DNA from: Epithemia pelagica
Taxonomy: Eukaryota; Protista; Bacillariophyta
Assembly (NCBI GenBank): GCA_946965045.2
Contig: OX337238.1
Location: forward strand, 1,426,001-1,490,000
Reading direction: 5' to 3'
DNA: 64,000 nucleotides
The notes under the pieces were generated by a model. It was not told the origin of the DNA and did not search any database. It saw nothing but the letters and a program-made list of their open reading frames with translations. A program made the position numbers and the translations under genes. How positions within the stretch are numbered: position 1 is the first letter of the stretch; the number at the start of each line of letters is the position of its first letter. Positions 1-28,008 of this stretch are shown here, in pieces.

Positions 1-152
1 ACTTCCGCATATATGTTTTGTATTTCAGTGATTGTTGTTTCTTTTGCATGGAAGGTACGCAAGTGGCGTGTCACAGAATCCATGTCCGAGTATTCTTCGC
101 GATCCCCGAGATGATCTTTCTTGCGCTTTCTGGTACGACGGAAACTTGCCAT
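1..152 (-). CDS. 5' end of the nuclease-kinase gene, upstream copy (partial at window edge)
   Basis: Identical to 8203-8354, the first ~50 codons of the 789-aa ORF. Confidence 0.85.
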   Translation of the reverse strand, partial: MASFRRTRKRKKDHLGDREEYSDMDSVTRHLRTFHAKETTITEIQNIYAE

Positions 153-204
153 TGTTGCTCTCGTGTCCTGACCAATCTGCTGTGTCGTTTATGACAACCC
201 AACG

Positions 205-253
205 CCACCACCCAACCCCCCCAACTAGTCCACCCCCAACTCCTCCACCCCCC
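205..253 (-). other. G-tract cluster with G-quadruplex potential upstream of the nuclease-kinase ATG (in every unit)
   Basis: Minus strand reads GGGGGGtggaggagttGGGGGtggactagttGGGGGGGttGGGtggtgg, about 50-100 nt upstream of the ATG at 152. Confidence 0.45.
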
Positions 254-1097
254 AAATAAATCTTGGTGTCTTCTCCGTTGCGCTCGTCGTTCGCCGTCGT
301 TCGTGGGTAGAGGTACCCCCTAGCATAAGGGGGTCTCCAGGTTAATCGTACTCAGATTACACCCATACCCATTCACGAGCAGGACTCACGCCTCTGCTAG
401 GGGTAATGGCATGGCCGGCGTGGTGGTTGACACGCGTCGTCGTGATGATATGGAGTGTGTGGGCAGGTGCGTGCACCCGGGATTCCCTGATACGACTCCA
501 ATTCAGGAATACAACGTCACCCAGACCCGGGTTTTTCTTTCATGTTCGACGAGAAATTCTATCGGAGCTCTAGCTAACCTTACGCCTCATCCCAGCTCTA
601 GAGCAATATCCTCCGAAACTCTATCTGGCACTCTCTATTCTACCTCCATACTTACCCCCAAGCGGAAGGGCGAGCGAGAATTCAGTGCGCATTCTCATAC
701 TCACCCCCAAGGCGCGATCCGCAAAATCGGCGATTTTCGCCGTCTTTGACAAAAAATCACAACAACAACAACGCAATCACTACGATACGGATCTTGTTGC
801 GGTTGTTACAACACCCATGGGCCCTCCCCATCCGACCCGAGTTGTTTGCCCTGTCCATAGCAACCCAAGGGACCATCCTGGCGTGGAAACCGACCACTCC
901 GACCTGCTGATTCCAGTTACATCTCAGTACCAAGACACTGCAATGGGAAGCAACAACAACCCGAATGAAAACCATCCATCCGACACCCTCCCAATCCCAC
1001 CCGTGTTGTTGATACTATCTCTACCCACCTCATGGACCGTCCTGGCCTGGAAACCAACCCGTCGGCGCTACACGAGGCCATCAACTCCGCTTTCCGT

Positions 1098-1642
1098 TGT
1101 TAGGATTCTCACCAAAAACTAGGTGGCGAAACCTAAGGTACAACTCTCATCGAATGATGCTAGTATTTTATGGCATCCGTGTTAGAATTCTCACCGTCTA
1201 TGGTGGTTAGATTCTACATCTCATCGATTCCCCATGTCACATAGCCTCATGCTATCGCATCATGCCATCTAGCTTCGAGCTATGTTCCCTAGCTTCGCGC
1301 TATATCGACCTATATTTCTTCGCAAATCATGAAAAGTAAGAATAGATTGACGAACTCACTCTCAAGACTAAACTGGGTCGTGCGGTATTACAACGGACGT
1401 AAATTTGGCCGTTGCTCGGACATTATACTAACGCCCTAAGCGTACGCGCCCGAAATCATCGAGCGCGCCCAAGCGACATCCGATGGCCTTGATACTACTC
1501 CCAGCTAAAAGCTAAAGGTATAAGGTGGAATTCAAACTTCGAACCCCAGGAACGTACGTCATTCCCTTCCTCCAAGTCTAGGCACTGTGGTCAACGAGTT
1601 TTGTGTTGTGAGAATGATTCACCTGTGGTGAGAAACCAAACA
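1098..1642. mobile_element. Element A: solo-LTR-like/TIR element, interrupted and partly deleted in the units (also +8202n)
   Basis: Left end TGTTAGGATTCTCACCA; right end TGGTGAGAAACC(A/T)AACA, an inverted repeat of about 17 bp. Uninterrupted version at 50309-50855. No target-site duplication found. Confidence 0.55.
1180..1478 (+). mobile_element. Element B: 299-bp TG...CA solo-LTR-like insertion nested in element A (also 9382-9680, 17584-17882, 25786-26084, 33988-34286, 42190-42488)
   Basis: TGTTAG...GCGACA flanked by TCCG/TCCG. The empty site ggcaTCCGatg is present at 50383-50393. Homologous to the first ~300 nt of element C on the minus strand. Confidence 0.65.
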
Positions 1643-1868
1643 ACAACGACTGTGCGAGTTCCTGGAATGGTATCATGACCAACGCGCATGTCAAACGCTG
1701 AACCGAAAACGCCACCACGTAGAAGGTCTAACGCAGTGGGATACTTGGTTGGTCATGAGAACTACCAGCACACGTCTCGATGGCATGTCATGGAGCGATT
1801 CATCGTCCAGTTACGTTCATCGATGGTCCTCTCCGGGGAGAAACCATTGCTGCGCAAGGGTACCAACT

Positions 1869-2634
1869 TAGTAGAATTCCGTCAGTACACGCTCTAGAAG
1901 AGCCACAATCGATTACCAACTGATACCAAGGTTCTCCACGGGTCAGAGAACAAAGGAAACCCAAGGGTTCTATCGTAGGGATAGTCAGGACACTGAAGAC
2001 GTGATGATATGGTAATGTTAATGATTGTGAGCTTACTACTAGGTTTGGTGTGTGAGGTTTCCATTCTTGTTGTCGATCGTGTGAAATAGGTTCTTGGCGG
2101 TGATAGGACTGGAATGGTTGGAGTTGATGTATGTGAGGTATATAACATGTATATGTGCTTGTATATCATATACAGCCTCAACGATTCTTGGCTAAAGTTG
2201 GTATATGTAGTTTTGTTGGCGCGTCCTTGTTCGCAATCTTGAAATAGTGGGAACGATGATGTGGTCCCGTGTGATCGTGATTCGAGCCTTGTGTACTTAG
2301 ACCGTTGGGTCGGATACATGATCGCCACGCTCTGATAGTTCTTGCGCGCATCTTGACGAATTTGGGCGCGCACGCTTAGGGCATAGGTCAGGCTCGGATG
2401 TTCAACCGATGATCATCCGTTGATGGGATATCAAGACCAAAGTTGATTCTTGATAGCACGTTTGTCAATCTGTTCTCACTTTTTGGTATATGCGACCGAA
2501 ATATAGGTTGAGCTAGCGCAAAGCTAGGTATGTAGTGTGGATGTAGGTGATGTAGGTGATGTTTGAAGCCACGGGACTCGACTAACCGATGAGGTGCCGA
2601 ACCTAACCGATGATTTTCGGTGAGAGTTCTACTA
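1869..2634 (-). mobile_element. Element C: 766-bp solo LTR-like element with TA...TA ends and a 5-bp TSD (also 10071-10836, 18273-19038, 26475-27240, 34677-35442, 42879-43644)
   Basis: CAACT|TAGTAGAATTC...GAGTTCTACTA|CAACT. The paralogous flank near 51075-51090 has a single CAACT (empty site). Confidence 0.8.
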
Positions 2635-3402
2635 CAACTGATTTGGAGGATGCCATTGTCGTACCAAAACTACATTTGGTGTGGAGACGTGTAGTGCGCG
2701 CAAGCCGATGGAGCTCACGCAGAAGCGTAGTTGGACATGCCTCTGTTGTATTCGACCGAGGGCAGTTCCGCTACCGTGGTGCATGTCTCTCTCGTTTGCC
2801 CTTGCACGGGCATAGAGGTGGACGGCGATACATGGTTTTCACGGTTTGTGGAGGACACACAATGTGAAGAGTCGAATACGATTTCACTCTTGTGGGGAAA
2901 ATTCCCTTGAGCAGAGTGGTCCTTCTACTACAGTAGAGCAAGTCGAGAAGTGTTGGGAACAAAGCGTACCCTTTCACCACGAGACTCGGGTCATAGGTTA
3001 TCAAGGTAGGTAGTTGATTCCTAGTTGAGAGCCAACAATTTTCCACCTCCCAATTGGTCGAGCAAATCCACAGATCCTCGATTGAATATAAAATGTCCTT
3101 TCCAAAGACCGAATCTGGTATCATGTGTCGCTCACAGTTTCAGTACACAGCAAATAGGGAGTACACAGCAACCTGGAATGCTACCTCTCTTCCTCTTTCG
3201 TTTTGCCACGCAGTCTCGTCGTGTATCGCCTACAGCGAAAGATACTTCTTGGGGCTTGTCATGTAGTCTATGTGCGATTGACTCACCTGCACCATCGTAC
3301 GCATGACAGGCACACCTTGCTCTTCCACGCGTTGCTGTCTATTAGATTGTACAGACTCTCTCGTGCTGCCATTTCTTGTCGACGTTGTAAAGCGCCGTGA
3401 CC

Positions 3403-4622
3403 ATGCCCACGACATTGAAAGACCAAGCATGGCAGTCGGGCCTTGTCCTGTTGAACGAGACACCAGAGTGAAATCTAAATGACTGGACTCCTCTTGTGGG
3501 TGGATGGCGTTTGCGTCATGCTTCTGTCGTACATGATCATCCTGATCAGGACATGAACAACCACAACAACAACAACAAGAGACAAACGGTCGTCGTGTTG
3601 GGAGGAATCGACGAAGGATATTATAGTACCAATTCCGTTCTGGTCCTAAATTTATCAGAATTGGACAAACAGTGGCGAGAAGGGCCACCAATAAACAAGG
3701 CACGTTGTGGACACGCCGCTGTTGTGTGCAACGGAGGCGTCTACGTGATAGGAGGATACCATGACAATGAAGACAATGACGCAACTGCTACTTTAGGTTT
3801 CATGGAAAGAATTGATGCCAACGATATGCTGCAATCATTTTCGACAACAAGAAGCACATATGAGAGCCATTGAACGACATTAAATTGCCGATTATCAACG
3901 GAACGACAAGGATGTTGTGCTGTTGTGGTTCACAATCGATATATTGTGGTAATGGGTGGAAGGAACAGCGGGCAACACTTATGGTCGGTGGATGTAATTG
4001 ATGCCAGTACTCACACTGTCGCTGCAGCGCCATGCATGAACGTTACTCGATCAAATTTTGCCAGTGCGGTCATTGGTCACTGTATCTTAGTCGCTGGAGG
4101 CCAAAACGATGAGGGAAGACATGATTCCGTGGAGTATTTGGACTTCGCGGAGGAGAGGAAAGACGACACTTTGACTACAGTCATTTCCTTCTCGTCAACA
4201 TGGATGACTCATTGCTCTCCATTGCACAAGGGTGTTGTGGAATGGTTGCCGTGGGATCTTGTCTGGTTGTGGCGGGAGTAGAATCTCGAAGGGTGCAAGT
4301 CTTGGATACGCACCGCAACCGCATGTGGAATCTCCCGCGATTAAGAAATGATGCTCTAAGCCGTGGTATGGTGGCTGCTGTTGATCGAATTGCCGTGATT
4401 GGTGGATGGGGCTATCCGTCCTGTGGGACATTACCACTTATGGATAGGAATTCGTGGTGTTTTCGTCAACTCTGTCAGCAGCAACCCAGCGGATGGTATC
4501 ATTTTCGGGAAGGAATGGATACCCAACATGGTGATATTTTACCCTTGTCCAAATCGACCTCAGCTCGTAAACGCGCAAGGCCCAATACGCTCCGTGGTGA
4601 TGAAGGGAAGGATGAAGCCTAG
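3403..4622 (+). pseudogene. Kelch-repeat protein pseudogene, unit 1
   Basis: Kelch blades (VVVLGG, VYVIGG, IVVMGG, ILVAGG, IAVIGG, GHAAVV). In-frame TGA at 3469-3471 and 3871-3873, and a 10-bp deletion near 4213 relative to the paralog at ~59.9 kb. Confidence 0.85.
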
Positions 4623-5340
4623 ACGTTTTGTTTAAGTCGTTGACTTGTTTTCAATGTTCGATTGCAATCGTAGAACCTAGTAAGTGGCTACTCAAAAGAA
4701 GAAAGAACACGTTGCAAGATAGAATGTATTTGTTTGTTATCAAAGGCGTGGAAGGAATGACCCAGCTTTGTGTGTCTACAAGTGGTACTGCGCTTTGGTG
4801 GCCTTACCTGTGGTGACCTGACAGTTGTGGGACAGAGCCACCACCGTGGTGGTGCGGGTCGTGAGACAAGAATCGGGGGCGTTGTGGTGGCACTTTGCAG
4901 GACAAAGTCATTGTCCAAACACAGAGTCATTGTCCATGGATCGGTAGACGCCAGAATCCGACAGTGGTGGTGAATTCCAGAAAGGAAGAGTTTTGTATAA
5001 ATGTCGTAGTCAAGGACAATCCGCCATTTTGTGTCCATTACGATTTTGCAGGAGTGCCGAGTTCTATTCTTGTTCGTGACAGGGCAGTTCCATACCTGTT
5101 TCTAGACATGGTGGTTGCTAGGATTGTCATGGGGGTTCCGTCCTGTCGTTTCTTGGTGGCATGTGATGCTGCTGCTACGACACAAGTTTTGCTGTTGACC
5201 ACGACCAATCATCTGTCATACCACCCAAACAATATATACTGGAAGACGGTGGAGGAAGACACTCCGCAGTGGTCGGTAGCGGTAGTATTGGTGGACTTTG
5301 TGTCTACTGGGTTAAGTCAGAACTTCTTTCCGCCACATAT

Positions 5341-5650
5341 GGGTGGGGCGACGCCAATGCGGAACCGGGGGAATATTGTGGTGGGGGATAGGTGGTCCCG
5401 GTCGCTTTGGCAAAGCAGTCCCATTTCGCATCATCCTTCACAATGGCATTCCAGTCCAAGCGGGGAAAGGATTTGGTCATGTACTCTTTGATTTCCGGTC
5501 CCGTGGTGAGGGACCAGATTTTGTGATTGGGTCGCGTAATGATATTGGCCGGTCGAATCAAAGTGGGATCCTTGACGTGCAAGAGTCCCAAACTCAACCC
5601 TTGGTCGCCGGTATTGACGGATCGAAATCGAATGACAGAGGTCATAAGTA
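5341..5650 (-). pseudogene. Internal fragment of a FAD monooxygenase, paralog of 56580-58472 (also 13543-13852, 21745-22054, 29947-30256, 38149-38458, 46350-46659)
   Basis: Translates SVNTGDQGLSLGLL(H/P)VKDPTLIRPANIITRPNHKIWSLTTGP...PQYSPGSA, matching about 57635-57931. Lacks the GxGxxG and GD motifs. Confidence 0.9.
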
Positions 5651-5984
5651 TTAATCGAGCATTATACGTTATATGCATGGAATACTGAATTCTGTGACGC
5701 CGCAGAGTGTGTTGGCGCAAGTAGCAAAGGTTTTTCTTTCAATTACGAGTATCATACAAGATAACGAATTGAAGATGCCTTCTTCAAGAATGCTGCACTG
5801 CGGAATGGTACTCCTAGATATAAAACTAATAGTAGCAACAGAACCCAATCCAACTACTCTAGTGGCACTATTGCATCTAGCATATCCCCCCTTGCCAATA
5901 CATGTTCCGAGTCGACGGGTCGATTTCCCCCGTTTCCGTCAGGATGGGTTTGTTGGGTTCTACCCATCAAAGATTTTTCAAGAA

Positions 5985-8354
5985 TCATGCAGTGTTGAGA
6001 ATTGAACCGGCCGTCTTCAAAAATTTTGCACTGCGCTCATTCCGGACGGTCAAGTTCAAGGCTCTCAACGATTTCATGGTTTGCTCGCGACGATCTAAAA
6101 AGCACGTAGTATCAGGGTTTCGCTCATAGAACCCTTGCCAAGGAATCGGCACACCTGTGCTCAAGGCACAAATGGTAAACAGCAATGATGCGGTATCGTG
6201 TTTCGGCATGGGACGCCAAGCCGTCCTGTTCCGCTTTTGGTGCACTTCTCGATGGGCAAATGCAAGGCTGCCTCGAAAACCCATGGCTTTTTCACCAACC
6301 CCATAAACTGAGCAACCCCAGTCAATGAGGACAAACTTTTTACATTTTTTGTCAAAAATGATGTTTCGAGCACAGACATCCAAATGGAAGACATTCCGTC
6401 CATGCGCAAAGTCCAAAGCAGACTGGATATCTGTGTATAGGCACTGCAGTTGCTCCTTATCAAGCTTGCCGTTCACGAGGGATCCTTTTGGTGAGAACGT
6501 GAAGGCAGGGACGTTGATCGTAGTTCCTCGAATCGTGTAGCAGATGCTTCCGAAGTCTTTAAGCACTGGAATCGACGGTCGATCGGAGTCAGGTTTTTCG
6601 TTAAGAGCCCTCAGAGCTCTCAGCTCCCTTTCGATGTATTGAACCTCCCCCACGACGGAAGATTTCACTACGAAGTTCTCATTTTTTGTTCCTCTGTTTT
6701 CCACCTCCTTTCCTTGGTACACAATCCCATGCGTTCCGTATCCAATGACATCATGAAGTTCTAGCGGCTGTACCTGTGCAACATGTGTAGATTGATTGTG
6801 CACATGGTAGGTGGCATTTGCTGCCGAGTCTCCACCGAAGAACTGCAACCCAAGAACTTTGTCGTCTGAACAAACCAGTCTGAACAGCTCCTGCATCCCG
6901 ACCGGCACAGACGTATTGTTGGCAGGAAAAGGACAAGAGGCATTTCTCGTTAGATATTTTTGGTCGCCCTCTTTTGTGACAAACTTCTTCAAGGCAACTT
7001 CCGAAACCAAGGGGAGAATTCCAGATCGCTCGACATCCAGGGACACGTCGCCGGTGTCCATTCCTGACAAGGTCATTGTTATCACCTCCAAATAAACCGG
7101 AGTGATAGCCAGAGCAATGGACTTGAGATTAATACCCACTCCACCAAGATTGAAGGCAACAAGAGTCCGCTTCGCCAGATGACCTACGCATTGATGAATG
7201 GCCTCCTTATGTGTGTCTTGGGGTTTTTTCGTCCCGCGTCTAACGTTTTTGGCTTCCACAAGTAATGACATTTCATGAGCAAGAAGATAAGGATTGAAAG
7301 CCATGAGCTGATTGACTTCATAGTCCACAAATCGCTTGGTACCATAACTACCCGTTTTTGGAATATAGCGCTCCTTTCGCACATCGGATCGAACCGCCGG
7401 CTCCAATGTGTATTTGACACGCTCCTGTTGCCATGCCGGCACCGCTGCTGCTGGCACCGCGACATCCTGCTCGATTCCGTCTTCCTCGTCCGCCGTTTTC
7501 TCGGCAGTGCCGATGAGTGACAAGGCTCGAAACAGACACGCTAGGATAGGCTGTACCGCATTCTTCTCCGCTGATGAGTAGGATGGAAACGTGCATTTGC
7601 ATTTCTTGTCTGCCGCCTGAGTGTTCCATCCGAGAATGTGGCTGACAGTCCTGCTGATTTGTGCGCTTGTTGGGTTCTCGTTGATATTTGACTGTTTCAT
7701 GGTGTCATTCCAAAAGGAGGCAAACTTAAGCAAATTTGCAGGTTGCGTGTCTTGTTTCGGAGGGGCTTTAACAGCGGCGAGATGTTTTTCGGCCATCTGT
7801 TGTTTACTGCCAGGGCTGTTGATGTGAACACCCCTCATCATGTACTCAAAATGCTCTTTGGTGCAGTCATCCTCGGTTGCAATGACGGCTGAGTTTATCT
7901 CTGTTTTGTTTGCAAAATCAGCCATGGTCTTGAGGTCGTCGCTCACTCCTGAGAACTTCTTCATGGTCGTTTCTAGTGGCTCGGCAACGTCGTTAAACAG
8001 AAAAAGATGTAAAGCCCAATAATCAGGGTAACCATCATCACTTGAAAAACTTTGCAACTTTTGGATATGCAAATTGGGGAACCGAGCTTTTAGACTGTTT
8101 AGATTTCTCCCCGAGAGGAACTCCTCGAGACTTGTTCTTTGTCCTTCGTCCACCTCGTTTCGTCCAGATGCAAGTCCAAAAACCACGCGAAGGTGAAGGC
8201 GGACTTCCGCATATATGTTTTGTATTTCAGTGATTGTTGTTTCTTTTGCATGGAAGGTACGCAAGTGGCGTGTCACAGAATCCATGTCCGAGTATTCTTC
8301 GCGATCCCCGAGATGATCTTTCTTGCGCTTTCTGGTACGACGGAAACTTGCCAT
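5985..8354 (-). CDS. 789-aa PD-(D/E)XK nuclease-like + atypical protein kinase fusion (Crinkler/Spok-like architecture), unit 1
   Basis: Kinase motifs IGYGTHGIVY (537-546), VVK564, E577, HLDVCARN (657-664) and IDWG (677-680). Nuclease-like E328...D344...E367AK369...Q388 pattern. Basic N-terminus RRTRKRKK. Confidence 0.9.
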   Translation of the reverse strand: MASFRRTRKRKKDHLGDREEYSDMDSVTRHLRTFHAKETTITEIQNIYAEVRLHLRVVFGLASGRNEVDEGQRTSLEEFLSGRNLNSLKARFPNLHIQKLQSFSSDDGYPDYWALHLFLFNDVAEPLETTMKKFSGVSDDLKTMADFANKTEINSAVIATEDDCTKEHFEYMMRGVHINSPGSKQQMAEKHLAAVKAPPKQDTQPANLLKFASFWNDTMKQSNINENPTSAQISRTVSHILGWNTQAADKKCKCTFPSYSSAEKNAVQPILACLFRALSLIGTAEKTADEEDGIEQDVAVPAAAVPAWQQERVKYTLEPAVRSDVRKERYIPKTGSYGTKRFVDYEVNQLMAFNPYLLAHEMSLLVEAKNVRRGTKKPQDTHKEAIHQCVGHLAKRTLVAFNLGGVGINLKSIALAITPVYLEVITMTLSGMDTGDVSLDVERSGILPLVSEVALKKFVTKEGDQKYLTRNASCPFPANNTSVPVGMQELFRLVCSDDKVLGLQFFGGDSAANATYHVHNQSTHVAQVQPLELHDVIGYGTHGIVYQGKEVENRGTKNENFVVKSSVVGEVQYIERELRALRALNEKPDSDRPSIPVLKDFGSICYTIRGTTINVPAFTFSPKGSLVNGKLDKEQLQCLYTDIQSALDFAHGRNVFHLDVCARNIIFDKKCKKFVLIDWGCSVYGVGEKAMGFRGSLAFAHREVHQKRNRTAWRPMPKHDTASLLFTICALSTGVPIPWQGFYERNPDTTCFLDRREQTMKSLRALNLTVRNERSAKFLKTAGSILNTA

Positions 8355-11300
8355 TGTTGCTCTCGTGTCCTGACCAATCTGCTGTGTCGTTTATGACAAC
8401 CCAACGCCACCACCCAACCCCCCCAACTAGTCCACCCCCAACTCCTCCACCCCCCAAATAAATCTTGGTGTCTTCTCCGTTGCGCTCGTCGTTCGCCGTC
8501 GTTCGTGGGTAGAGGTACCCCCTAGCATAAGGGGGTCTCCAGGTTAATCGTACTCAGATTACACCCATACCCATTCACGAGCAGGACTCACGCCTCTGCT
8601 AGGGGTAATGGCATGGCCGGCGTGGTGGTTGACACGCGTCGTCGTGATGATATGGAGTGTGTGGGCAGGTGCGTGCACCCGGGATTCCCTGATACGACTC
8701 CAATTCAGGAATACAACGTCACCCAGACCCGGGTTTTTCTTTCATGTTCGACGAGAAATTCTATCGGAGCTCTAGCTAACCTTACGCCTCATCCCAGCTC
8801 TAGAGCAATATCCTCCGAAACTCTATCTGGCACTCTCTATTCTACCTCCATACTTACCCCCAAGCGGAAGGGCGAGCGAGAATTCAGTGCGCATTCTCAT
8901 ACTCACCCCCAAGGCGCGATCCGCAAAATCGGCGATTTTCGCCGTCTTTGACAAAAAATCACAACAACAACAACGCAATCACTACGATACGGATCTTGTT
9001 GCGGTTGTTACAACACCCATGGGCCCTCCCCATCCGACCCGAGTTGTTTGCCCTGTCCATAGCAACCCAAGGGACCATCCTGGCGTGGAAACCGACCACT
9101 CCGACCTGCTGATTCCAGTTACATCTCAGTACCAAGACACTGCAATGGGAAGCAACAACAACCCGAATGAAAACCATCCATCCGACACCCTCCCAATCCC
9201 ACCCGTGTTGTTGATACTATCTCTACCCACCTCATGGACCGTCCTGGCCTGGAAACCAACCCGTCGGCGCTACACGAGGCCATCAACTCCGCTTTCCGTT
9301 GTTAGGATTCTCACCAAAAACTAGGTGGCGAAACCTAAGGTACAACTCTCATCGAATGATGCTAGTATTTTATGGCATCCGTGTTAGAATTCTCACCGTC
9401 TATGGTGGTTAGATTCTACATCTCATCGATTCCCCATGTCACATAGCCTCATGCTATCGCATCATGCCATCTAGCTTCGAGCTATGTTCCCTAGCTTCGC
9501 GCTATATCGACCTATATTTCTTCGCAAATCATGAAAAGTAAGAATAGATTGACGAACTCACTCTCAAGACTAAACTGGGTCGTGCGGTATTACAACGGAC
9601 GTAAATTTGGCCGTTGCTCGGACATTATACTAACGCCCTAAGCGTACGCGCCCGAAATCATCGAGCGCGCCCAAGCGACATCCGATGGCCTTGATACTAC
9701 TCCCAGCTAAAAGCTAAAGGTATAAGGTGGAATTCAAACTTCGAACCCCAGGAACGTACGTCATTCCCTTCCTCCAAGTCTAGGCACTGTGGTCAACGAG
9801 TTTTGTGTTGTGAGAATGATTCACCTGTGGTGAGAAACCAAACAACAACGACTGTGCGAGTTCCTGGAATGGTATCATGACCAACGCGCATGTCAAACGC
9901 TGAACCGAAAACGCCACCACGTAGAAGGTCTAACGCAGTGGGATACTTGGTTGGTCATGAGAACTACCAGCACACGTCTCGATGGCATGTCATGGAGCGA
10001 TTCATCGTCCAGTTACGTTCATCGATGGTCCTCTCCGGGGAGAAACCATTGCTGCGCAAGGGTACCAACTTAGTAGAATTCCGTCAGTACACGCTCTAGA
10101 AGAGCCACAATCGATTACCAACTGATACCAAGGTTCTCCACGGGTCAGAGAACAAAGGAAACCCAAGGGTTCTATCGTAGGGATAGTCAGGACACTGAAG
10201 ACGTGATGATATGGTAATGTTAATGATTGTGAGCTTACTACTAGGTTTGGTGTGTGAGGTTTCCATTCTTGTTGTCGATCGTGTGAAATAGGTTCTTGGC
10301 GGTGATAGGACTGGAATGGTTGGAGTTGATGTATGTGAGGTATATAACATGTATATGTGCTTGTATATCATATACAGCCTCAACGATTCTTGGCTAAAGT
10401 TGGTATATGTAGTTTTGTTGGCGCGTCCTTGTTCGCAATCTTGAAATAGTGGGAACGATGATGTGGTCCCGTGTGATCGTGATTCGAGCCTTGTGTACTT
10501 AGACCGTTGGGTCGGATACATGATCGCCACGCTCTGATAGTTCTTGCGCGCATCTTGACGAATTTGGGCGCGCACGCTTAGGGCATAGGTCAGGCTCGGA
10601 TGTTCAACCGATGATCATCCGTTGATGGGATATCAAGACCAAAGTTGATTCTTGATAGCACGTTTGTCAATCTGTTCTCACTTTTTGGTATATGCGACCG
10701 AAATATAGGTTGAGCTAGCGCAAAGCTAGGTATGTAGTGTGGATGTAGGTGATGTAGGTGATGTTTGAAGCCACGGGACTCGACTAACCGATGAGGTGCC
10801 GAACCTAACCGATGATTTTCGGTGAGAGTTCTACTACAACTGATTTGGAGGATGCCATTGTCGTACCAAAACTACATTTGGTGTGGAGACGTGTAGTGCG
10901 CGCAAGCCGATGGAGCTCACGCAGAAGCGTAGTTGGACATGCCTCTGTTGTATTCGACCGAGGGCAGTTCCGCTACCGTGGTGCATGTCTCTCTCGTTTG
11001 CCCTTGCACGGGCATAGAGGTGGACGGCGATACATGGTTTTCACGGTTTGTGGAGGACACACAATGTGAAGAGTCGAATACGATTTCACTCTTGTGGGGA
11101 AAATTCCCTTGAGCAGAGTGGTCCTTCTACTACAGTAGAGCAAGTCGAGAAGTGTTGGGAACAAAGCGTACCCTTTCACCACGAGACTCGGGTCATAGGT
11201 TATCAAGGTAGGTAGTTGATTCCTAGTTGAGAGCCAACAATTTTCCACCTCCCAATTGGTCGAGCAAATCCACAGATCCTCGATTGAATATAAAATGTCC

Positions 11301-11604
11301 TTTCCAAAGACCGAATCTGGTATCATGTGTCGCTCACAGTTTCAGTACACAGCAAATAGGGAGTACACAGCAACCTGGAATGCTACCTCTCTTCCTCTTT
11401 CGTTTTGCCACGCAGTCTCGTCGTGTATCGCCTACAGCGAAAGATACTTCTTGGGGCTTGTCATGTAGTCTATGTGCGATTGACTCACCTGCACCATCGT
11501 ACGCATGACAGGCACACCTTGCTCTTCCACGCGTTGCTGTCTATTAGATTGTACAGACTCTCTCGTGCTGCCATTTCTTGTCGACGTTGTAAAGCGCCGT
11601 GACC

Positions 11605-12824
11605 ATGCCCACGACATTGAAAGACCAAGCATGGCAGTCGGGCCTTGTCCTGTTGAACGAGACACCAGAGTGAAATCTAAATGACTGGACTCCTCTTGTG
11701 GGTGGATGGCGTTTGCGTCATGCTTCTGTCGTACATGATCATCCTGATCAGGACATGAACAACCACAACAACAACAACAAGAGACAAACGGTCGTCGTGT
11801 TGGGAGGAATCGACGAAGGATATTATAGTACCAATTCCGTTCTGGTCCTAAATTTATCAGAATTGGACAAACAGTGGCGAGAAGGGCCACCAATAAACAA
11901 GGCACGTTGTGGACACGCCGCTGTTGTGTGCAACGGAGGCGTCTACGTGATAGGAGGATACCATGACAATGAAGACAATGACGCAACTGCTACTTTAGGT
12001 TTCATGGAAAGAATTGATGCCAACGATATGCTGCAATCATTTTCGACAACAAGAAGCACATATGAGAGCCATTGAACGACATTAAATTGCCGATTATCAA
12101 CGGAACGACAAGGATGTTGTGCTGTTGTGGTTCACAATCGATATATTGTGGTAATGGGTGGAAGGAACAGCGGGCAACACTTATGGTCGGTGGATATAAT
12201 TGATGCCAGTACTCACACTGTCGCTGCAGCGCCATGCATGAACGTTACTCGATCAAATTTTGCCAGTGCGGTCATTGGTCACTGTATCTTAGTCGCTGGA
12301 GGCCAAAACGATGAGGGAAGACATGATTCCGTGGAGTATTTGGACTTCGCGGAGGAGAGGAAAGACGACACTTTGACTACAGTCATTTCCTTCTCGTCAA
12401 CATGGATGACTCATTGCTCTCCATTGCACAAGGGTGTTGTGGAATGGTTGCCGTGGGATCTTGTCTGGTTGTGGCGGGAGTAGAATCTCGAAGGGTGCAA
12501 GTCTTGGATACGCACCGCAACCGCATGTGGAATCTCCCGCGATTAAGAAATGATGCTCTAAGCCGTGGTATGGTGGCTGCTGTTGATCGAATTGCCGTGA
12601 TTGGTGGATGGGGCTATCCGTCCTGTGGGACATTACCACTTATGGATAGGAATTCGTGGTGTTTTCGTCAACTCTGTCAGCAGCAACCCAGCGGATGGTA
12701 TCATTTTCGGGAAGGAATGGATACCCAACATGGTGATATTTTACCCTTGTCCAAATCGACCTCAGCTCGTAAACGCGCAAGGCCCAATACGCTCCGTGGT
12801 GATGAAGGGAAGGATGAAGCCTAG
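11605..12824 (+). pseudogene. Kelch-repeat pseudogene, unit 2
   Basis: Copy of 3403-4622 with the same lesions. Confidence 0.85.
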
Positions 12825-14186
12825 ACGTTTTGTTTAAGTCGTTGACTTGTTTTCAATGTTCGATTGCAATCGTAGAACCTAGTAAGTGGCTACTCAAAAG
12901 AAGAAAGAACACGTTGCAAGATAGAATGTATTTGTTTGTTATCAAAGGCGTGGAAGGAATGACCCAGCTTTGTGTGTCTACAAGTGGTACTGCGCTTTGG
13001 TGGCCTTACCTGTGGTGACCTGACAGTTGTGGGACAGAGCCACCACCGTGGTGGTGCGGGTCGTGAGACAAGAATCGGGGGCGTTGTGGTGGCACTTTGC
13101 AGGACAAAGTCATTGTCCAAACACAGAGTCATTGTCCATGGATCGGTAGACGCCAGAATCCGACAGTGGTGGTGAATTCCAGAAAGGAAGAGTTTTGTAT
13201 AAATGTCGTAGTCAAGGACAATCCGCCATTTTGTGTCCATTACGATTTTGCAGGAGTGCCGAGTTCTATTCTTGTTCGTGACAGGGCAGTTCCATACCTG
13301 TTTCTAGACATGGTGGTTGCTAGGATTGTCATGGGGGTTCCGTCCTGTCGTTTCTTGGTGGCATGTGATGCTGCTGCTACGACACAAGTTTTGCTGTTGA
13401 CCACGACCAATCATCTGTCATACCACCCAAACAATATATACTGGAAGACGGTGGAGGAAGACACTCCGCAGTGGTCGGTAGCGGTAGTATTGGTGGACTT
13501 TGTGTCTACTGGGTTAAGTCAGAACTTCTTTCCGCCACATATGGGTGGGGCGACGCCAATGCGGAACCGGGGGAATATTGTGGTGGGGGATAGGTGGTCC
13601 CGGTCGCTTTGGCAAAGCAGTCCCATTTCGCATCATCCTTCACAATGGCATTCCAGTCCAAGCGGGGAAAGGATTTGGTCATGTACTCTTTGATTTCCGG
13701 TCCCGTGGTGAGGGACCAGATTTTGTGATTGGGTCGCGTAATGATATTGGCCGGTCGAATCAAAGTGGGATCCTTGACGTGCAAGAGTCCCAAACTCAAC
13801 CCTTGGTCGCCGGTATTGACGGATCGAAATCGAATGACAGAGGTCATAAGTATTAATCGAGCATTATACGTTATATGCATGGAATACTGAATTCTGTGAC
13901 GCCGCAGAGTGTGTTGGCGCAAGTAGCAAAGGTTTTTCTTTCAATTACGAGTATCATACAAGATAACGAATTGAAGATGCCTTCTTCAAGAATGCTGCAC
14001 TGCGGAATGGTACTCCTAGATATAAAACTAATAGTAGCAACAGAACCCAATCCAACTACTCTAGTGGCACTATTGCATCTAGCATATCCCCCCTTGCCAA
14101 TACATGTTCCGAGTCGACGGGTCGATTTCCCCCGTTTCCGTCAGGATGGGTTTGTTGGGTTCTACCCATCAAAGATTTTTCAAGAA

Positions 14187-16556
14187 TCATGCAGTGTTGA
14201 GAATTGAACCGGCCGTCTTCAAAAATTTTGCACTGCGCTCATTCCGGACGGTCAAGTTCAAGGCTCTCAACGATTTCATGGTTTGCTCGCGACGATCTAA
14301 AAAGCACGTAGTATCAGGGTTTCGCTCATAGAACCCTTGCCAAGGAATCGGCACACCTGTGCTCAAGGCACAAATGGTAAACAGCAATGATGCGGTATCG
14401 TGTTTCGGCATGGGACGCCAAGCCGTCCTGTTCCGCTTTTGGTGCACTTCTCGATGGGCAAATGCAAGGCTGCCTCGAAAACCCATGGCTTTTTCACCAA
14501 CCCCATAAACTGAGCAACCCCAGTCAATGAGGACAAACTTTTTACATTTTTTGTCAAAAATGATGTTTCGAGCACAGACATCCAAATGGAAGACATTCCG
14601 TCCATGCGCAAAGTCCAAAGCAGACTGGATATCTGTGTATAGGCACTGCAGTTGCTCCTTATCAAGCTTGCCGTTCACGAGGGATCCTTTTGGTGAGAAC
14701 GTGAAGGCAGGGACGTTGATCGTAGTTCCTCGAATCGTGTAGCAGATGCTTCCGAAGTCTTTAAGCACTGGAATCGACGGTCGATCGGAGTCAGGTTTTT
14801 CGTTAAGAGCCCTCAGAGCTCTCAGCTCCCTTTCGATGTATTGAACCTCCCCCACGACGGAAGATTTCACTACGAAGTTCTCATTTTTTGTTCCTCTGTT
14901 TTCCACCTCCTTTCCTTGGTACACAATCCCATGCGTTCCGTATCCAATGACATCATGAAGTTCTAGCGGCTGTACCTGTGCAACATGTGTAGATTGATTG
15001 TGCACATGGTAGGTGGCATTTGCTGCCGAGTCTCCACCGAAGAACTGCAACCCAAGAACTTTGTCGTCTGAACAAACCAGTCTGAACAGCTCCTGCATCC
15101 CGACCGGCACAGACGTATTGTTGGCAGGAAAAGGACAAGAGGCATTTCTCGTTAGATATTTTTGGTCGCCTTCTTTTGTGACAAACTTCTTCAAGGCAAC
15201 TTCCGAAACCAAGGGGAGAATTCCAGATCGCTCGACATCCAGGGACACGTCGCCGGTGTCCATTCCTGACAAGGTCATTGTTATCACCTCCAAATAAACC
15301 GGAGTGATAGCCAGAGCAATGGACTTGAGATTAATACCCACTCCACCAAGATTGAAGGCAACAAGAGTCCGCTTCGCCAGATGACCTACGCATTGATGAA
15401 TGGCCTCCTTATGTGTGTCTTGGGGTTTTTTCGTCCCGCGTCTAACGTTTTTGGCTTCCACAAGTAATGACATTTCATGAGCAAGAAGATAAGGATTGAA
15501 AGCCATGAGCTGATTGACTTCATAGTCCACAAATCGCTTGGTACCATAACTACCCGTTTTTGGAATATAGCGCTCCTTTCGCACATCGGATCGAACCGCC
15601 GGCTCCAATGTGTATTTGACACGCTCCTGTTGCCATGCCGGCACCGCTGCTGCTGGCACCGCGACATCCTGCTCGATTCCGTCTTCCTCGTCCGCCGTAT
15701 TCTCGGCAGTGCCGATGAGTGACAAGGCTCGAAACAGACACGCTAGGATAGGCTGTACCGCATTCTTCTCCGCTGATGAGTAGGATGGAAACGTGCATTT
15801 GCATTTCTTGTCTGCCGCCTGAGTGTTCCATCCGAGAATGTGGCTGACAGTCCTGCTGATTTGTGCGCTTGTTGGGTTCTCGTTGATATTTGACTGTTTC
15901 ATGGTGTCATTCCAAAAGGAGGCAAACTTAAGCAAATTTGCAGGTTGCGTGTCTTGTTTCGGAGGGGCTTTAACAGCGGCGAGATGTTTTTCGGCCATCT
16001 GTTGTTTACTGCCAGGGCTGTTGATGTGAACACCCCTCATCATGTACTCAAAATGCTCTTTGGTGCAGTCATCCTCGGTTGCAATGACGGCTGAGTTTAT
16101 CTCTGTTTTGTTTGCAAAATCAGCCATGGTCTTGAGGTCGTCGCTCACTCCTGAGAACTTCTTCATGGTCGTTTCTAGTGGTTCGGCAACGTCGTTAAAC
16201 AGAAAAAGATGTAAAGCCCAATAATCAGGGTAACCATCATCACTTGAAAAACTTTGCAACTTTTGGATATGCAAATTGGGGAACCGAGCTTTTAGACTGT
16301 TTAGATTTCTCCCCGAGAGGAACTCCTCGAGACTTGTTCTTTGTCCTTCGTCCACCTCGTTTCGTCCAGATGCAAGTCCAGAAACCACGCGAAGGTGAAG
16401 GCGGACTTCCGCATATATGTTTTGTATTTCAGTGATTGTTGTTTCTTTTGCATGGAAGGTACGCAAGTGGCGTGTCACAGAATCCATGTCCGAGTATTCT
16501 TCGCGATCCCCGAGATGATCTTTCTTGCGCTTTCTGGTACGACGGAAACTTGCCAT
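14187..16556 (-). CDS. Nuclease-kinase fusion, unit 2 (S59, N286)
   Basis: Intact 789-aa ORF with the same motifs. Confidence 0.9.
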   Translation of the reverse strand: MASFRRTRKRKKDHLGDREEYSDMDSVTRHLRTFHAKETTITEIQNIYAEVRLHLRVVSGLASGRNEVDEGQRTSLEEFLSGRNLNSLKARFPNLHIQKLQSFSSDDGYPDYWALHLFLFNDVAEPLETTMKKFSGVSDDLKTMADFANKTEINSAVIATEDDCTKEHFEYMMRGVHINSPGSKQQMAEKHLAAVKAPPKQDTQPANLLKFASFWNDTMKQSNINENPTSAQISRTVSHILGWNTQAADKKCKCTFPSYSSAEKNAVQPILACLFRALSLIGTAENTADEEDGIEQDVAVPAAAVPAWQQERVKYTLEPAVRSDVRKERYIPKTGSYGTKRFVDYEVNQLMAFNPYLLAHEMSLLVEAKNVRRGTKKPQDTHKEAIHQCVGHLAKRTLVAFNLGGVGINLKSIALAITPVYLEVITMTLSGMDTGDVSLDVERSGILPLVSEVALKKFVTKEGDQKYLTRNASCPFPANNTSVPVGMQELFRLVCSDDKVLGLQFFGGDSAANATYHVHNQSTHVAQVQPLELHDVIGYGTHGIVYQGKEVENRGTKNENFVVKSSVVGEVQYIERELRALRALNEKPDSDRPSIPVLKDFGSICYTIRGTTINVPAFTFSPKGSLVNGKLDKEQLQCLYTDIQSALDFAHGRNVFHLDVCARNIIFDKKCKKFVLIDWGCSVYGVGEKAMGFRGSLAFAHREVHQKRNRTAWRPMPKHDTASLLFTICALSTGVPIPWQGFYERNPDTTCFLDRREQTMKSLRALNLTVRNERSAKFLKTAGSILNTA

Positions 16557-19500
16557 TGTTGCTCTCGTGTCCTGACCAATCTGCTGTGTCGTTTATGACA
16601 ACCCAACGCCACCACCCAACCCCCCCAACTAGTCCACCCCCAACTCCTCCACCCCCCAAATAAATCTTGGTGTCTTCTCCGTTGCGCTCGTCGTTCGCCG
16701 TCGTTCGTGGGTAGAGGTACCCCCTAGCATAAGGGGGTCTCCAGGTTAATCGTACTCAGATTACACCCATACCCATTCACGAGCAGGACTCACGCCTCTG
16801 CTAGGGGTAATGGCATGGCCGGCGTGGTGGTTGACACGCGTCGTCGTGATGATATGGAGTGTGTGGGCAGGTGCGTGCACCCGGGATTCCCTGATACGAC
16901 TCCAATTCAGGAATACAACGTCACCCAGACCCGGGTTTTTCTTTCATGTTCGACGAGAAATTCTATCGGAGCTCTAGCTAACCTTACGCCTCATCCCAGC
17001 TCTAGAGCAATATCCTCCGAAACTCTATCTGGCACTCTCTATTCTACCTCCATACTTACCCCCAAGCGGAAGGGCGAGCGAGAATTCAGTGCGCATTCTC
17101 ATACTCACCCCCAAGGCGCGATCCGCAAAATCGGCGATTTTCGCCGTCTTTGACAAAAAATCACAACAACAACAACGCAATCACTACGATACGGATCTTG
17201 TTGCGGTTGTTACAACACCCATGGGCCCTCCCCATCCGACCCGAGTTGTTTGCCCTGTCCATAGCAACCCAAGGGACCATCCTGGCGTGGAAACCGACCA
17301 CTCCGACCTGCTGATTCCAGTTACATCTCAGTACCAAGACACTGCAATGGGAAGCAACAACAACCCGAATGAAAACCATCCATCCGACACCCTCCCAATC
17401 CCACCCGTGTTGTTGATACTATCTCTACCCACCTCATGGACCGTCCTGGCCTGGAAACCAACCCGTCGGCGCTACACGAGGCCATCAACTCCGCTTTCCG
17501 TTGTTAGGATTCTCACCAAAAACTAGGTGGCGAAACCTAAGGTACAACTCTCATCGAATGATGCTAGTATTTTATGGCATCCGTGTTAGAATTCTCACCG
17601 TCTATGGTGGTTAGATTCTACATCTCATCGATTCCCCATGTCACATAGCCTCATGCTATCGCATCATGCCATCTAGCTTCGAGCTATGTTCCCTAGCTTC
17701 GCGCTATATCGACCTATATTTCTTCGCAAATCATGAAAAGTAAGAATAGATTGACGAACTCACTCTCAAGACTAAACTGGGTCGTGCGGTATTACAACGG
17801 ACGTAAATTTGGCCGTTGCTCGGACATTATACTAACGCCCTAAGCGTACGCGCCCGAAATCATCGAGCGCGCCCAAGCGACATCCGATGGCCTTGATACT
17901 ACTCCCAGCTAAAAGCTAAAGGTATAAGGTGGAATTCAAACTTCGAACCCCAGGAACGTACGTCATTCCCTTCCTCCAAGTCTAGGCACTGTGGTCAACG
18001 AGTTTTGTGTTGTGAGAATGATTCACCTGTGGTGAGAAACCAAACAACAACGACTGTGCGAGTTCCTGGAATGGTATCATGACCAACGCGCATGTCAAAC
18101 GCTGAACCGAAAACGCCACCACGTAGAAGGTCTAACGCAGTGGGATACTTGGTTGGTCATGAGAACTACCAGCACACGTCTCGATGGCATGTCATGGAGC
18201 GATTCATCGTCCAGTTACGTTCATCGATGGTCCTCTCCGGGGAGAAACCATTGCTGCGCAAGGGTACCAACTTAGTAGAATTCCGTCAGTACACGCTCTA
18301 GAAGAGCCACAATCGATTACCAACTGATACCAAGGTTCTCCACGGGTCAGAGAACAAAGGAAACCCAAGGGTTCTATCGTAGGGATAGTCAGGACACTGA
18401 AGACGTGATGATATGGTAATGTTAATGATTGTGAGCTTACTACTAGGTTTGGTGTGTGAGGTTTCCATTCTTGTTGTCGATCGTGTGAAATAGGTTCTTG
18501 GCGGTGATAGGACTGGAATGGTTGGAGTTGATGTATGTGAGGTATATAACATGTATATGTGCTTGTATATCATATACAGCCTCAACGATTCTTGGCTAAA
18601 GTTGGTATATGTAGTTTTGTTGGCGCGTCCTTGTTCGCAATCTTGAAATAGTGGGAACGATGATGTGGTCCCGTGTGATCGTGATTCGAGCCTTGTGTAC
18701 TTAGACCGTTGGGTCGGATACATGATCGCCACGCTCTGATAGTTCTTGCGCGCATCTTGACGAATTTGGGCGCGCACGCTTAGGGCATAGGTCAGGCTCG
18801 GATGTTCAACCGATGATCATCCGTTGATGGGATATCAAGACCAAAGTTGATTCTTGATAGCACGTTTGTCAATCTGTTCTCACTTTTTGGTATATGCGAC
18901 CGAAATATAGGTTGAGCTAGCGCAAAGCTAGGTATGTAGTGTGGATGTAGGTGATGTAGGTGATGTTTGAAGCCACGGGACTCGACTAACCGATGAGGTG
19001 CCGAACCTAACCGATGATTTTCGGTGAGAGTTCTACTACAACTGATTTGGAGGATGCCATTGTCGTACCAAAACTACATTTGGTGTGGAGACGTGTAGTG
19101 CGCGCAAGCCGATGGAGCTCACGCAGAAGCGTAGTTGGACATGCCTCTGTTGTATTCGACCGAGGGCAGTTCCGCTACCGTGGTGCATGTCTCTCTCGTT
19201 TGCCCTTGCACGGGCATAGAGGTGGACGGCGATACATGGTTTTCACGGTTTGTGGAGGACACACAATGTGAAGAGTCGAATACGATTTCACTCTTGTGGG
19301 GAAAATTCCCTTGAGCAGAGTGGTCCTTCTACTACAGTAGAGCAAGTCGAGAAGTGTTGGGAACAAAGCGTACCCTTTCACCACGAGACTCGGGTCATAG
19401 GTTATCAAGGTAGGTAGTTGATTCCTAGTTGAGAGCCAACAATTTTCCACCTCCCAATTGGTCGAGCAAATCCACAGATCCTCGATTGAATATAAAATGT

Positions 19501-19806
19501 CCTTTCCAAAGACCGAATCTGGTATCATGTGTCGCTCACAGTTTCAGTACACAGCAAATAGGGAGTACACAGCAACCTGGAATGCTACCTCTCTTCCTCT
19601 TTCGTTTTGCCACGCAGTCTCGTCGTGTATCGCCTACAGCGAAAGATACTTCTTGGGGCTTGTCATGTAGTCTATGTGCGATTGACTCACCTGCACCATC
19701 GTACGCATGACAGGCACACCTTGCTCTTCCACGCGTTGCTGTCTATTAGATTGTACAGACTCTCTCGTGCTGCCATTTCTTGTCGACGTTGTAAAGCGCC
19801 GTGACC

Positions 19807-21026
19807 ATGCCCACGACATTGAAAGACCAAGCATGGCAGTCGGGCCTTGTCCTGTTGAACGAGACACCAGAGTGAAATCTAAATGACTGGACTCCTCTTG
19901 TGGGTGGATGGCGTTTGCGTCATGCTTCTGTCGTACATGATCATCCTGATCAGGACATGAACAACCACAACAACAACAACAAGAGACAAACGGTCGTCGT
20001 GTTGGGAGGAATCGACGAAGGATATTATAGTACCAATTCCGTTCTGGTCCTAAATTTATCAGAGTTGGACAAACAGTGGCGAGAAGGGCCACCAATAAAC
20101 AAGGCACGTTGTGGACACGCCGCTGTTGTGTGCAACGGAGGCGTCTACGTGATAGGAGGATACCATGACAATGAAGACAATGACGCAACTGCTACTTTAG
20201 GTTTCATGGAAAGAATTGATGCCAACGATATGCTGCAATCATTTTCGACAACAAGAAGCACATATGAGAGCCATTGAACGACATTAAATTGCCGATTATC
20301 AACGGAACGACAAGGATGTTGTGCTGTTGTGGTTCACAATCGATATATTGTGGTAATGGGTGGAAGGAACAGCGGGCAACACTTATGGTCGGTGGATATA
20401 ATTGATGCCAGTACTCACACTGTCGCTGCAGCGCCATGCATGAACGTTACTCGATCAAATTTTGCCAGTGCGGTCATTGGTCACTGTATCTTAGTCGCTG
20501 GAGGCCAAAACGATGAGGGAGGACATGATTCCGTGGAGTATTTGGACTTCGCGGAGGAGAGGAAAGACGACACTTTGACTACAGTCATTTCCTTCTCGTC
20601 AACATGGATGACTCATTGCTCTCCATTGCACAAGGGTGTTGTGGAATGGTTGCCGTGGGATCTTGTCTGGTTGTGGCGGGAGTAGAATCTCGAAGGGTGC
20701 AAGTCTTGGATACGCACCGCAACCGCATGTGGAATCTCCCGCGATTAAGAAATGATGCTCTAAGCCGTGGTATGGTGGCTGCTGTTGATCGAATTGCCGT
20801 GATTGGTGGATGGGGCTATCCGTCCTGTGGGACATTACCACTTATGGATAGGAATTCGTGGTGTTTTCGTCAACTCTGTCAGCAGCAACCCAGCGGATGG
20901 TATCATTTTCGGGAAGGAATGGATACCCAACATGGTGATATTTTACCCTTGTCCAAATCGACCTCAGCTCGTAAACGCGCAAGGCCCAATACGCTCCGTG
21001 GTGATGAAGGGAAGGATGAAGCCTAG
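19807..21026 (+). pseudogene. Kelch-repeat pseudogene, unit 3
   Basis: Copy of 3403-4622. Confidence 0.85.
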
Positions 21027-27700: not shown

Positions 27701-28008
27701 GTCCTTTCCAAAGACCGAATCTGGTATCATGTGTCGCTCACAGTTTCAGTACACAGCAAATAGGGAGTACACAGCAACCTGGAATGCTACCTCTCTTCCT
27801 CTTTCGTTTTGCCACGCAGTCTCGTCGTGTATCGCCTACAGCGAAAGATACTTCTTGGGGCTTGTCATGTAGTCTATGTGCGATTGACTCACCTGCACCA
27901 TCGTACGCATGACAGGCACACCTTGCTCTTCCACGCGTTGCTGTCTATTAGATTGTACAGACTCTCTCGTGCTGCCATTTCTTGTCGACGTTGTAAAGCG
28001 CCGTGACC

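Follow-up and report, generated by a model that had tools for sequence, protein, structure and literature searches.

A tandemly amplified diatom gene that encodes a protein kinase fused to a putative nuclease

We analyzed a 64,000-nucleotide stretch of the genome of Epithemia pelagica (positions 1,426,001 to 1,490,000 of contig OX337238.1; hereafter, the window). The window contains six copies of a gene for a 789-amino-acid protein with a protein kinase domain at its C-terminus and, probably, a restriction-endonuclease (REase) fold in its middle. We lean towards the view that the protein is a nuclear nuclease that is gated by its own kinase and that serves in genetic conflict. The combination of an REase domain and a kinase is already known. 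What appears to be new is a conserved, multi-copy diatom family that lacks both the header of Crinkler proteins and the cysteine cluster of Spok proteins, and that is found here in a polymorphic array of 8.2-kb units. The family is undescribed in the searchable literature; the catalogue of Zhang et al. 2016 may already list it.

In the explanation that we favor, the protein would be an intracellular and probably nuclear two-enzyme protein. The REase-fold nuclease, with a complete set of putative metal-binding and catalytic residues (E263, D344, E367, K369, and the invariant Q388), would damage nucleic acid, and the kinase in the same chain would control it, either by autophosphorylation or by phosphorylating a shared target. 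Gating of this kind is also the model that others have put forward for the REase-kinase modules of Crinkler-type proteins and for Spok. The family is fast-evolving and multi-copy in pennate diatoms and often lies in transposon-rich DNA, which may be the signature of a genetic conflict, whether as a selfish element or as a defense. In E. pelagica, an 8.2-kb segment was recently amplified into a tandem array, probably by unequal recombination.

Domains of the protein

We refer to the first copy in the window as the focal gene. Its features are as follows (coordinates are positions in the window):

5985..8354, minus strand: focal gene (copy 1), an intact open reading frame (ORF) of 789 amino acids for the putative nuclease-kinase, with an ATG start; the stop codon is at 5985-5987
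8319..8342, minus strand: basic cluster that resembles a nuclear localization signal (NLS), residues 5-12 (from the translation)
7590..8279, minus strand: N-terminal helical region, residues 26-255, which varies across the family (from AlphaFold2 secondary structure)
7005..7589, minus strand: predicted PD-(D/E)XK domain, residues 256-450, with the motif E263, D344, E367-x-K369, Q388-x3-H392 (from conservation, topology, and Foldseek)
6765..7004, minus strand: linker, residues 451-530, with P484 and G486 conserved and without a cysteine cluster (from the alignment)
5988..6764, minus strand: protein kinase domain, residues 531-789, with key residues G538/G540, K564, E577, H657-x-D659, N664, D678-W-G, H701, D720, and R755 (from Pfam, profile, Foldseek, and the alignment)

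Judging from its sequence, the C-terminal domain is a member of the eukaryotic protein kinase superfamily and should be catalytically competent. Pfam's Pkinase matches residues 534-708 (33.0 bits, versus a cut-off of 31.7; E = 5.5e-8), and this is the sole Pfam match in the focal protein. A profile of the family matches CK2 alpha with E = 3e-22. When Foldseek was given a model of the whole protein, it found kinases only (VRK2, a CMGC kinase, and CK2, with E of about 1e-9 to 1e-8; the best was 1.8e-9).

We examined the conservation of each domain in an alignment of 51 relatives with 17-75% identity, from which the counts below are taken. A first-pass annotation of this DNA, made from the sequence alone, had described a kinase with intact catalytic residues, and the alignment bears this out: K564, D659, and N664 are each present in 51/51 relatives, and D678 is present in 50/51. 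G538/G540, E577, and H657 are likewise conserved. All six elements are kept, namely the glycine loop, the VAIK lysine, the glutamate of helix alphaC, the HRD aspartate, the asparagine, and the DFG aspartate. The same annotation had pointed out two departures from typical kinases, DWG and the lack of an APE motif, and the focal protein has both. The DFG position is occupied by D678-W679-G680 (across the family, the middle residue is F in 25 cases, W in 21, and another residue in 5), and APE is replaced by A-H701-R-E, with H701 present in 48/51. In the C-lobe, D720 and R755 of normal kinases are retained.

For the middle domain, the annotation had proposed a PD-(D/E)XK-like core formed by E328, D344, E367-x-K369, and Q388. 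These residues do have these numbers, and most of the proposal held up: D344 is conserved in 50/51 relatives, E367 in 47/51, K369 in 49/51, and Q388 in 51/51. E328 fared less well, as it is conserved in just 28/51. E263 is conserved in 50/51, and H392, which is four positions beyond Q388, is conserved in 40/51. In a second, non-overlapping set of 49 relatives, the same columns of the middle domain and the kinase are conserved at 90% or above. Among the roughly 100 relatives, which have no more than 17-25% identity, each of E263, D344, E367, K369, and Q388 is kept in 92-100% of cases.

We built an AlphaFold2 model of the whole protein from the alignment of 51 sequences (pLDDT = 83, pTM = 0.85) and a separate model of residues 200-505 (pLDDT = 86.6). 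The middle domain is predicted to comprise a helix (263-288), three strands (324-331, 341-348, and 364-368), another helix (378-405), and a final strand (410-417), mostly with pLDDT above 85. In other words, the models have the alpha-beta-beta-beta-alpha-beta core of PD-(D/E)XK nucleases, with D344 on strand 2, E367-x-K369 on strand 3, and Q388 on the helix that follows.

We then compared the model of the middle domain to other structures with Foldseek, as the first-pass annotation had suggested. In the PDB, the top matches were chains of the mammalian mitoribosome (E = 4e-3, probability 0.96), which are presumably mL37/mL65. A review calls mL37/mL65 repurposed endonucleases (PMC8998825). The next matches in the PDB were RecE, SduA, LHK-Exo, MGME1, and DrdV (E = 0.4-0.6). 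Among predicted viral structures, named nucleases made up about 19 of the best 50 matches (E = 0.02-0.2), and many of these were exodeoxyribonuclease 8 (RecE) or were of the PD-(D/E)XK, RecB-family, or Cas4 type. Named nucleases (E = 0.02-0.6) dominate the named matches of the middle domain. Because the structural matches are consistent in their fold class yet individually weak, and because matches by sequence are nil, we rate an REase fold as probable, not proven.

The first-pass annotation had also reported a basic, NLS-like N-terminus followed by a helical region, and both are there. Residues 5-12 are RRTRKRKK, and K or R accounts for 8 of the first 20 positions. AlphaFold2 predicts helices through residue 150 or so and again at 206-288. 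The N-terminus is strongly hydrophilic over its first 30 residues, and hydropathy does not reach transmembrane grade in any 19-residue stretch of the focal protein, so the protein appears to have neither a signal peptide nor a membrane anchor. The basic cluster might target the protein to the nucleus. Along the gene, the rate of non-synonymous substitution (dN) is highest in the N-terminal part, and conservation across the family starts at P257/E263.

The tandem array and the gene family

The first-pass annotation had suspected that the gene was amplified. We found six intact ORFs of 789 amino acids, one in each of six tandem units of 8,202 bp:

1..50390, no strand: tandem array, with six full units (1-49211) plus 1,179 bp from the start of a seventh (from spacing and identity)
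14187..16556, minus strand: gene copy 2, intact, with 2 amino-acid differences from copy 1
22389..24758, minus strand: gene copy 3, intact, with the same protein as copy 2
30591..32960, minus strand: gene copy 4, intact, with 3 amino-acid differences from copy 1
38793..41162, minus strand: gene copy 5, intact, with 3 amino-acid differences from copy 1
46994..49363, minus strand: gene copy 6, intact, with 1 amino-acid difference from copy 1; the last array copy of an allelic contig encodes the same protein (see below)
50391..51684, no strand: degenerate partial unit at the right edge, with identity falling from 96% to 78-83%

The window opens inside the array. The spacing of the units is 8,202 bp five times and then 8,201 bp; the ORFs are 8,202 bp apart as well, with one interval of 8,201 bp. 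Identity to unit 2 is 99.72-100%, individual units carry 0-22 substitutions, and there is a single indel. The base composition of the window is periodic at about 8.2 kb. The six ORF copies vary at six nucleotide positions, and all of the amino-acid changes lie outside of residues 320-770. An rRNA array was ruled out: Rfam found nothing at its gathering thresholds anywhere in the window.

At the right edge, identity to the unit drops stepwise (99.5%, 96%, and then 78-83%) before the sequence becomes unique flank (49212-51684). The copy at this edge lacks unit positions 1869-2634. The same deletion is found in the terminal unit at the opposite end of the array, on ctg1294l (L003 15716-16101).

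Near-identical repeats are difficult to assemble, and in the public assembly of the same sample (ERZ21939226), the array lies at contig ends, so an artifact of assembly had to be considered. We think that there is very little chance of this. First, the units carry their own substitutions and an indel, as described above. Second, other contigs of ERZ21939226 carry the array unit, and every gene copy that was read there is open. One of these contigs is colinear with positions 42797-59362 of the window (L015 762-17371) at 99.63% identity, so we consider it to be allelic. This independent contig has four gene copies with two insertions of copia-type retrotransposons between them, while the window has six copies and no insertion. 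(To the right of position 59362, the sequences of the window and the allelic contig are unrelated.) Third, a further contig with two copies at its end provides the left-hand flank, so that both edges of the array are anchored in unique sequence. Thus, the array is real, and its structure is polymorphic between haplotypes.

To find relatives of the focal protein, we ran an exhaustive phmmer search against 1.84 billion representatives. This gave 379 matches at E ≤ 1e-3 and 191 at E ≤ 1e-10. Most matches span residues 320-770 or so in one stretch, which suggests that the middle domain and the kinase form a single module. In a set of 5.8 billion proteins, close homologues were very rare and patchily distributed. 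One family member is the annotated protein KAI2509378.1 from the araphid pennate diatom Fragilaria crotonensis, which is the only organism that was named by our look-ups of clusters. A scan of metagenomes for the family yielded two loci only, and a search of viral contigs with two family patterns found no relative.

The same assembly contains other members of the family. A single-copy, intact paralogue on contig L001 has 73% amino-acid identity and 83% nucleotide identity to the array gene. Its similarity to the array gene reaches little further than the ORF, from about 16 bp before the ATG to about 175 bp past the stop codon, and its neighbors are ordinary cellular genes. A third close paralogue (L014 9062-11809) has 86% DNA identity to the array gene. 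It is interrupted once and was split into two ORFs when called, a hint of birth-and-death turnover among the genes of the family. A more distant member on contig L013 adjoins a fragment of a PIF1 helicase and a copia-type gene. A separate protein kinase gene of 339 amino acids (L013 13508-14527, minus strand) is convergent to that distant member. No Pfam family was recognized in the neighbors of the paralogues.

Between the array gene and a close paralogue, the ratio of non-synonymous to synonymous substitution rates (dN/dS) is 0.67, with dS = 0.23. The ratio is 0.49 for the kinase and 0.70 for the putative nuclease domain. Between the array gene and a distant member, dN/dS is about 0.15-0.19, with dS saturated. 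These ratios suggest that the family has been constrained over the long term but that recent copies diverge quickly.

In a second diatom sample, a family gene and a gene for a Harbinger/PIF DDE transposase form a 6.8-kb unit that is duplicated at 99% identity (L008 9906-16749 and from 20436 onward; L009 5936-13016). A long terminal repeat (LTR) element separates the copies, and the two genes are found together once more at a distance of 57 kb. In this diatom, the family gene is flanked by a hairpin-bearing repeat of about 110 bp (L008 9712-9818 and 13102-13210). These associations, along with the PIF1-helicase fragment and the copia gene beside the distant paralogue, raise the possibility that the gene is a cargo or component of a transposon, in which case its copy number would reflect the activity of the element and not a function in the cell. 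It is also thought that the toxin domains of Crinkler/RHS (CR) proteins derive from the nucleases of transposons (PMC5289972). Nevertheless, we doubt this explanation. There is no transposase in the unit in the window, we found no terminal inverted repeats at the ends of the 6.8-kb unit with the Harbinger gene, and the paralogue on L001 lies among ordinary cellular genes. Furthermore, the copies in the array are arranged head to tail with a fixed period, and the edges of the array fade into old flank, which argues for unequal crossing-over and against transposition.

The rest of the unit and the flanking genes

Besides the focal ORF, the unit and its right flank contain these features (coordinates within the array are for unit 1):

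3496..4622, plus strand: remnant of a Kelch-repeat gene, repeated in every unit (Kelch_1, E = 5.6e-9 and 2e-14 when the pieces were searched separately)
5342..5626, no strand: fragment of a FAD-monooxygenase gene, 285 bp, 89% identical, inverted, to 57646-57930
1179..2528, no strand: transposon-derived segment with nested 31-nucleotide inverted repeats, in every unit (from a sequence match to L013)
52036..53418, plus strand: MFS transporter gene, right flank
54065-56248, minus strand, and 56502-58472, plus strand: FAD-dependent monooxygenase paralogues, head to head, with about 69% identical DNA
60750-63562, minus strand: AAA_16/STAND ATPase ORF of 602 amino acids, followed by an ORF of 329 amino acids on the same strand

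The Kelch remnant is broken by one in-frame stop codon and one frameshift, which are common to all units. Within the transposon-derived segment, a stretch of 305 bp has 98.7% identity to DNA that neighbors a copia-type gene (L013 17945-18664). This segment also encloses an ORF of 159 amino acids that does not belong to a known family. Apart from the Kelch pieces, no Pfam family was found in the other ORFs of the unit. The unit thus looks like a patchwork: since the remainder consists of a broken Kelch gene, a fragment of a monooxygenase, and transposon debris, no gene other than the nuclease-kinase ORF was alive, as far as the sequence tells, when the unit was amplified.

Parts of the unit have older copies nearby. 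About 1.3 kb of the unit (4073-5338) matches the flank at 58715-60037, inverted, with 75-87% identity. Because this part and the monooxygenase fragment have inverted flank copies that are 75-89% identical, the unit seems to have been built from older local duplications before it was amplified. A second, fragmentary Kelch-like stretch is inverted in the flank (about 58715-60098).

The first-pass annotation had guessed that the host is a diatom, and the MFS transporter confirms this. Its best named relatives are from Epithemia clementina (62%), Pseudo-nitzschia multistriata (50%), Nitzschia, Craspedostauros, and Seminavis, which are all raphid pennate diatoms. Further to the right, an ORF of 408 amino acids (53978-55204, plus strand) is antisense to the first monooxygenase; it does not belong to a family and is probably spurious. 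The STAND ORF and the 329-amino-acid ORF may be one NLR-like gene that is split by a stop codon or an intron. Both are missing from the allelic contig.

Comparison to known systems and possible roles

The first-pass annotation had cited two precedents from the literature, and both hold. First, the combination of an REase domain and a kinase is a recognized class of C-terminal modules in Crinkler and RHS-type proteins, according to PMC5289972, which cites Zhang et al. 2016. That article also describes the proposal that the REase carries the toxicity of CR modules and that the kinase regulates it. Second, in Spok3 of Podospora, a predicted nuclease kills and a kinase confers resistance (PMC6660238). 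The annotation had therefore called the diatom protein Spok/Crinkler-like. This fits the nuclease-kinase architecture, while the hallmarks of each group, the cysteine cluster of Spok and the Crinkler header, are absent.

We compared the diatom protein to Podospora anserina Spok2/3/4 by relying on their published description (Vogan et al. 2019, PMC6660238). Both are single polypeptides with a helical N-terminus, then a predicted PD-(D/E)XK nuclease (D...ExK and a downstream Q-x3), and then a C-terminal kinase with a catalytic aspartate. Both are also multi-copy, at differing loci and in repeat-rich DNA. In SPOK3, the lysine of the nuclease is needed for killing, and the kinase aspartate and the cysteine cluster are needed for resistance (PMC6660238). 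The diatom protein does not have the C-x3-C-x13-C-x5-H-x7-H cluster upstream of its kinase, and a relaxed version of this Cys/His pattern matched just one of 226 proteins, which was not the focal protein. Where Spok and HsdR have Q-x3-Y, the diatom protein has Q-x3-H (its glutamine is invariant, as described above, and its histidine is not). The distance from the lysine of ExK to the kinase aspartate is 290 residues in the diatom protein, versus 427 in SPOK3 (K240 to D667; PMC6660238), so the diatom linker is 137 residues shorter. The diatom kinase is a CK2-like eukaryotic protein kinase, while the Spok kinase is described as being closer to eukaryotic-like kinases. The hosts differ as well: Spok is found in an ascomycete and the focal gene in a diatom. 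No named Spok was among the matches when we searched with sequences of the focal protein and the family.

Could the focal gene nevertheless be a true Spok-like meiotic driver, that is, a single-gene killer-rescue element whose nuclease kills cells or gametes without the gene, whose kinase protects carriers, and whose array raises the dose? The first-pass annotation had conjectured a poison-antidote or defense system whose strength scales with copy number. Besides the shared order of domains and the conserved Q-x3-H at the place of Q-x3-Y, this would fit with several of our results: the paralogues lie at unrelated loci, with similarity that ends just outside of the ORF, and in transposon-rich settings; the copy number and the insertions differ between the allelic versions; and the protein evolves quickly between paralogues. 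On the other hand, the Cys/His cluster that is missing is necessary for resistance in Spok (Vogan et al., PMC6660238), the spacing of the two active sites is different, and the kinase is closest to CK2. We consider a true Spok-like driver to be improbable.

The Crinkler/RHS proteins, such as CRN8 of Phytophthora, also combine an REase-superfamily nuclease with a protein kinase and have a nuclear-targeting signal, and CRN genes are reported to have head-to-tail copies and an association with transposons, much like the diatom array (as summarized in PMC5289972). The diatom family does not have their ubiquitin-like header. Pfam's Crinkler models did not match the focal protein (E ≤ 1) or 100 relatives (E ≤ 0.01), and the motifs LxLFLAK and HVLVxxP are present in 0/100 family members. 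The N-terminus of the focal protein is predicted to be helical; some CR headers are alpha-helical and not ubiquitin-like (PMC5289972). The diatom protein also differs from Crinklers in that it shows no sign of secretion and its host is a free-living phototroph.

Each domain has other relatives. CK2 alpha is the kinase's best match by sequence profile and is among the best by structure, and it also has D-W-G for D-F-G. The focal kinase has only about 20% identity to CK2 alpha, has A-H-R-E for APE, and is fused to a nuclease-like domain, so it is not a CK2 orthologue. The RecE, RecB, Cas4, and HsdR nucleases, which recur among the Foldseek matches, share the alpha-beta-beta-beta-alpha-beta core with the aspartate on strand 2 and E-x-K on strand 3. 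They have no detectable sequence similarity to the middle domain, and the focal gene has no helicase or methylase partner and is fused to a kinase instead.

Another precedent for a nuclease that is gated by a kinase or pseudokinase in the same chain is Ire1/RNase L, and kinase-coupled nucleases are a recurrent design in immunity. The arrangement is different there: the nuclease of Ire1/RNase L is a KEN-domain RNase that is C-terminal to the kinase, while the diatom's REase-fold domain is N-terminal to the kinase, and the two nucleases are not homologous. Still, the focal protein could be an effector of host defense. The kinase would be a sensor or switch that frees the nuclease to act on viral or transposon DNA, or else on the cell's own DNA (abortive infection), and an arms race would account for the amplification. 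The expansion of the family, its fast evolution, and the birth and death of its copies are as expected from this, and the variable N-terminal regions could serve as sensor or targeting modules. There is also the NLR-like STAND/AAA_16 ORF, 11 kb from the array. This proximity may be a coincidence, as that gene is missing from the allelic contig. The focal protein has no recognizable sensor domain, and our search of viral contigs, which found no relative, gave no hint of a viral counterpart. A role in defense seems possible to us, although it is not the likely outcome.

Several observations weigh against a kinase-gated nuclease that is amplified because of conflict. Taken singly, the structural matches to nucleases are all weak (E = 4e-3 to 0.6, TM of 0.1-0.4, and a large root-mean-square deviation). 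No sequence match of the middle domain to any nuclease was found when we searched Pfam with the whole protein, Pfam with a domain-only alignment (E ≤ 10), or PDB sequences with a domain-only profile. The basic cluster is found within the first 60 residues of just 7/100 family members, which are close relatives only. Among the six substitutions that distinguish the ORF copies, four are non-synonymous, and since the units are nearly identical, finding an open ORF in every copy is uninformative about selection. Finally, the unit carries dead fragments, so its amplification may be a neutral segmental duplication.

Alternatively, the protein might be an ordinary signaling kinase with a non-catalytic N-terminal domain, and the array a recent, neutral segmental duplication in a repeat-rich region. 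The databases do support the kinase only, the assignment of the nuclease is not statistically secure, the unit carries dead fragments, and the differences between the copies look neutral. Yet for a non-catalytic domain, it is hard to explain why E263, D344, E367, K369, and Q388 are so strongly conserved. Also, the close homologues are few, and their distribution is patchy. We therefore think that an ordinary kinase is unlikely, and we continue to favor a nuclease that would be controlled by the kinase and that would act in genetic conflict.

Diatoms, which are among the major primary producers, have a sexual cycle. In the searchable literature, no selfish toxin-antidote gene and no nuclease-based immune effector has been described in diatoms. 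The family is a tangible candidate: it is conserved, its catalytic residues are clear, a genome holds several paralogues, and the locus varies between haplotypes. Expression and population data could therefore be used to test ideas about genetic conflict, amplification, and kinase-controlled nucleases in stramenopiles. If this family is related to Spok or to the REase-kinase modules of Crinklers, then fungal drivers, oomycete effectors, and algal genes would share an ancient toxin design. And if the focal gene does prove to be a killer-rescue element, it would be the first Spok-like single-gene element outside of fungi, one that distorts its own transmission or eliminates non-carriers, with the array setting the dose.

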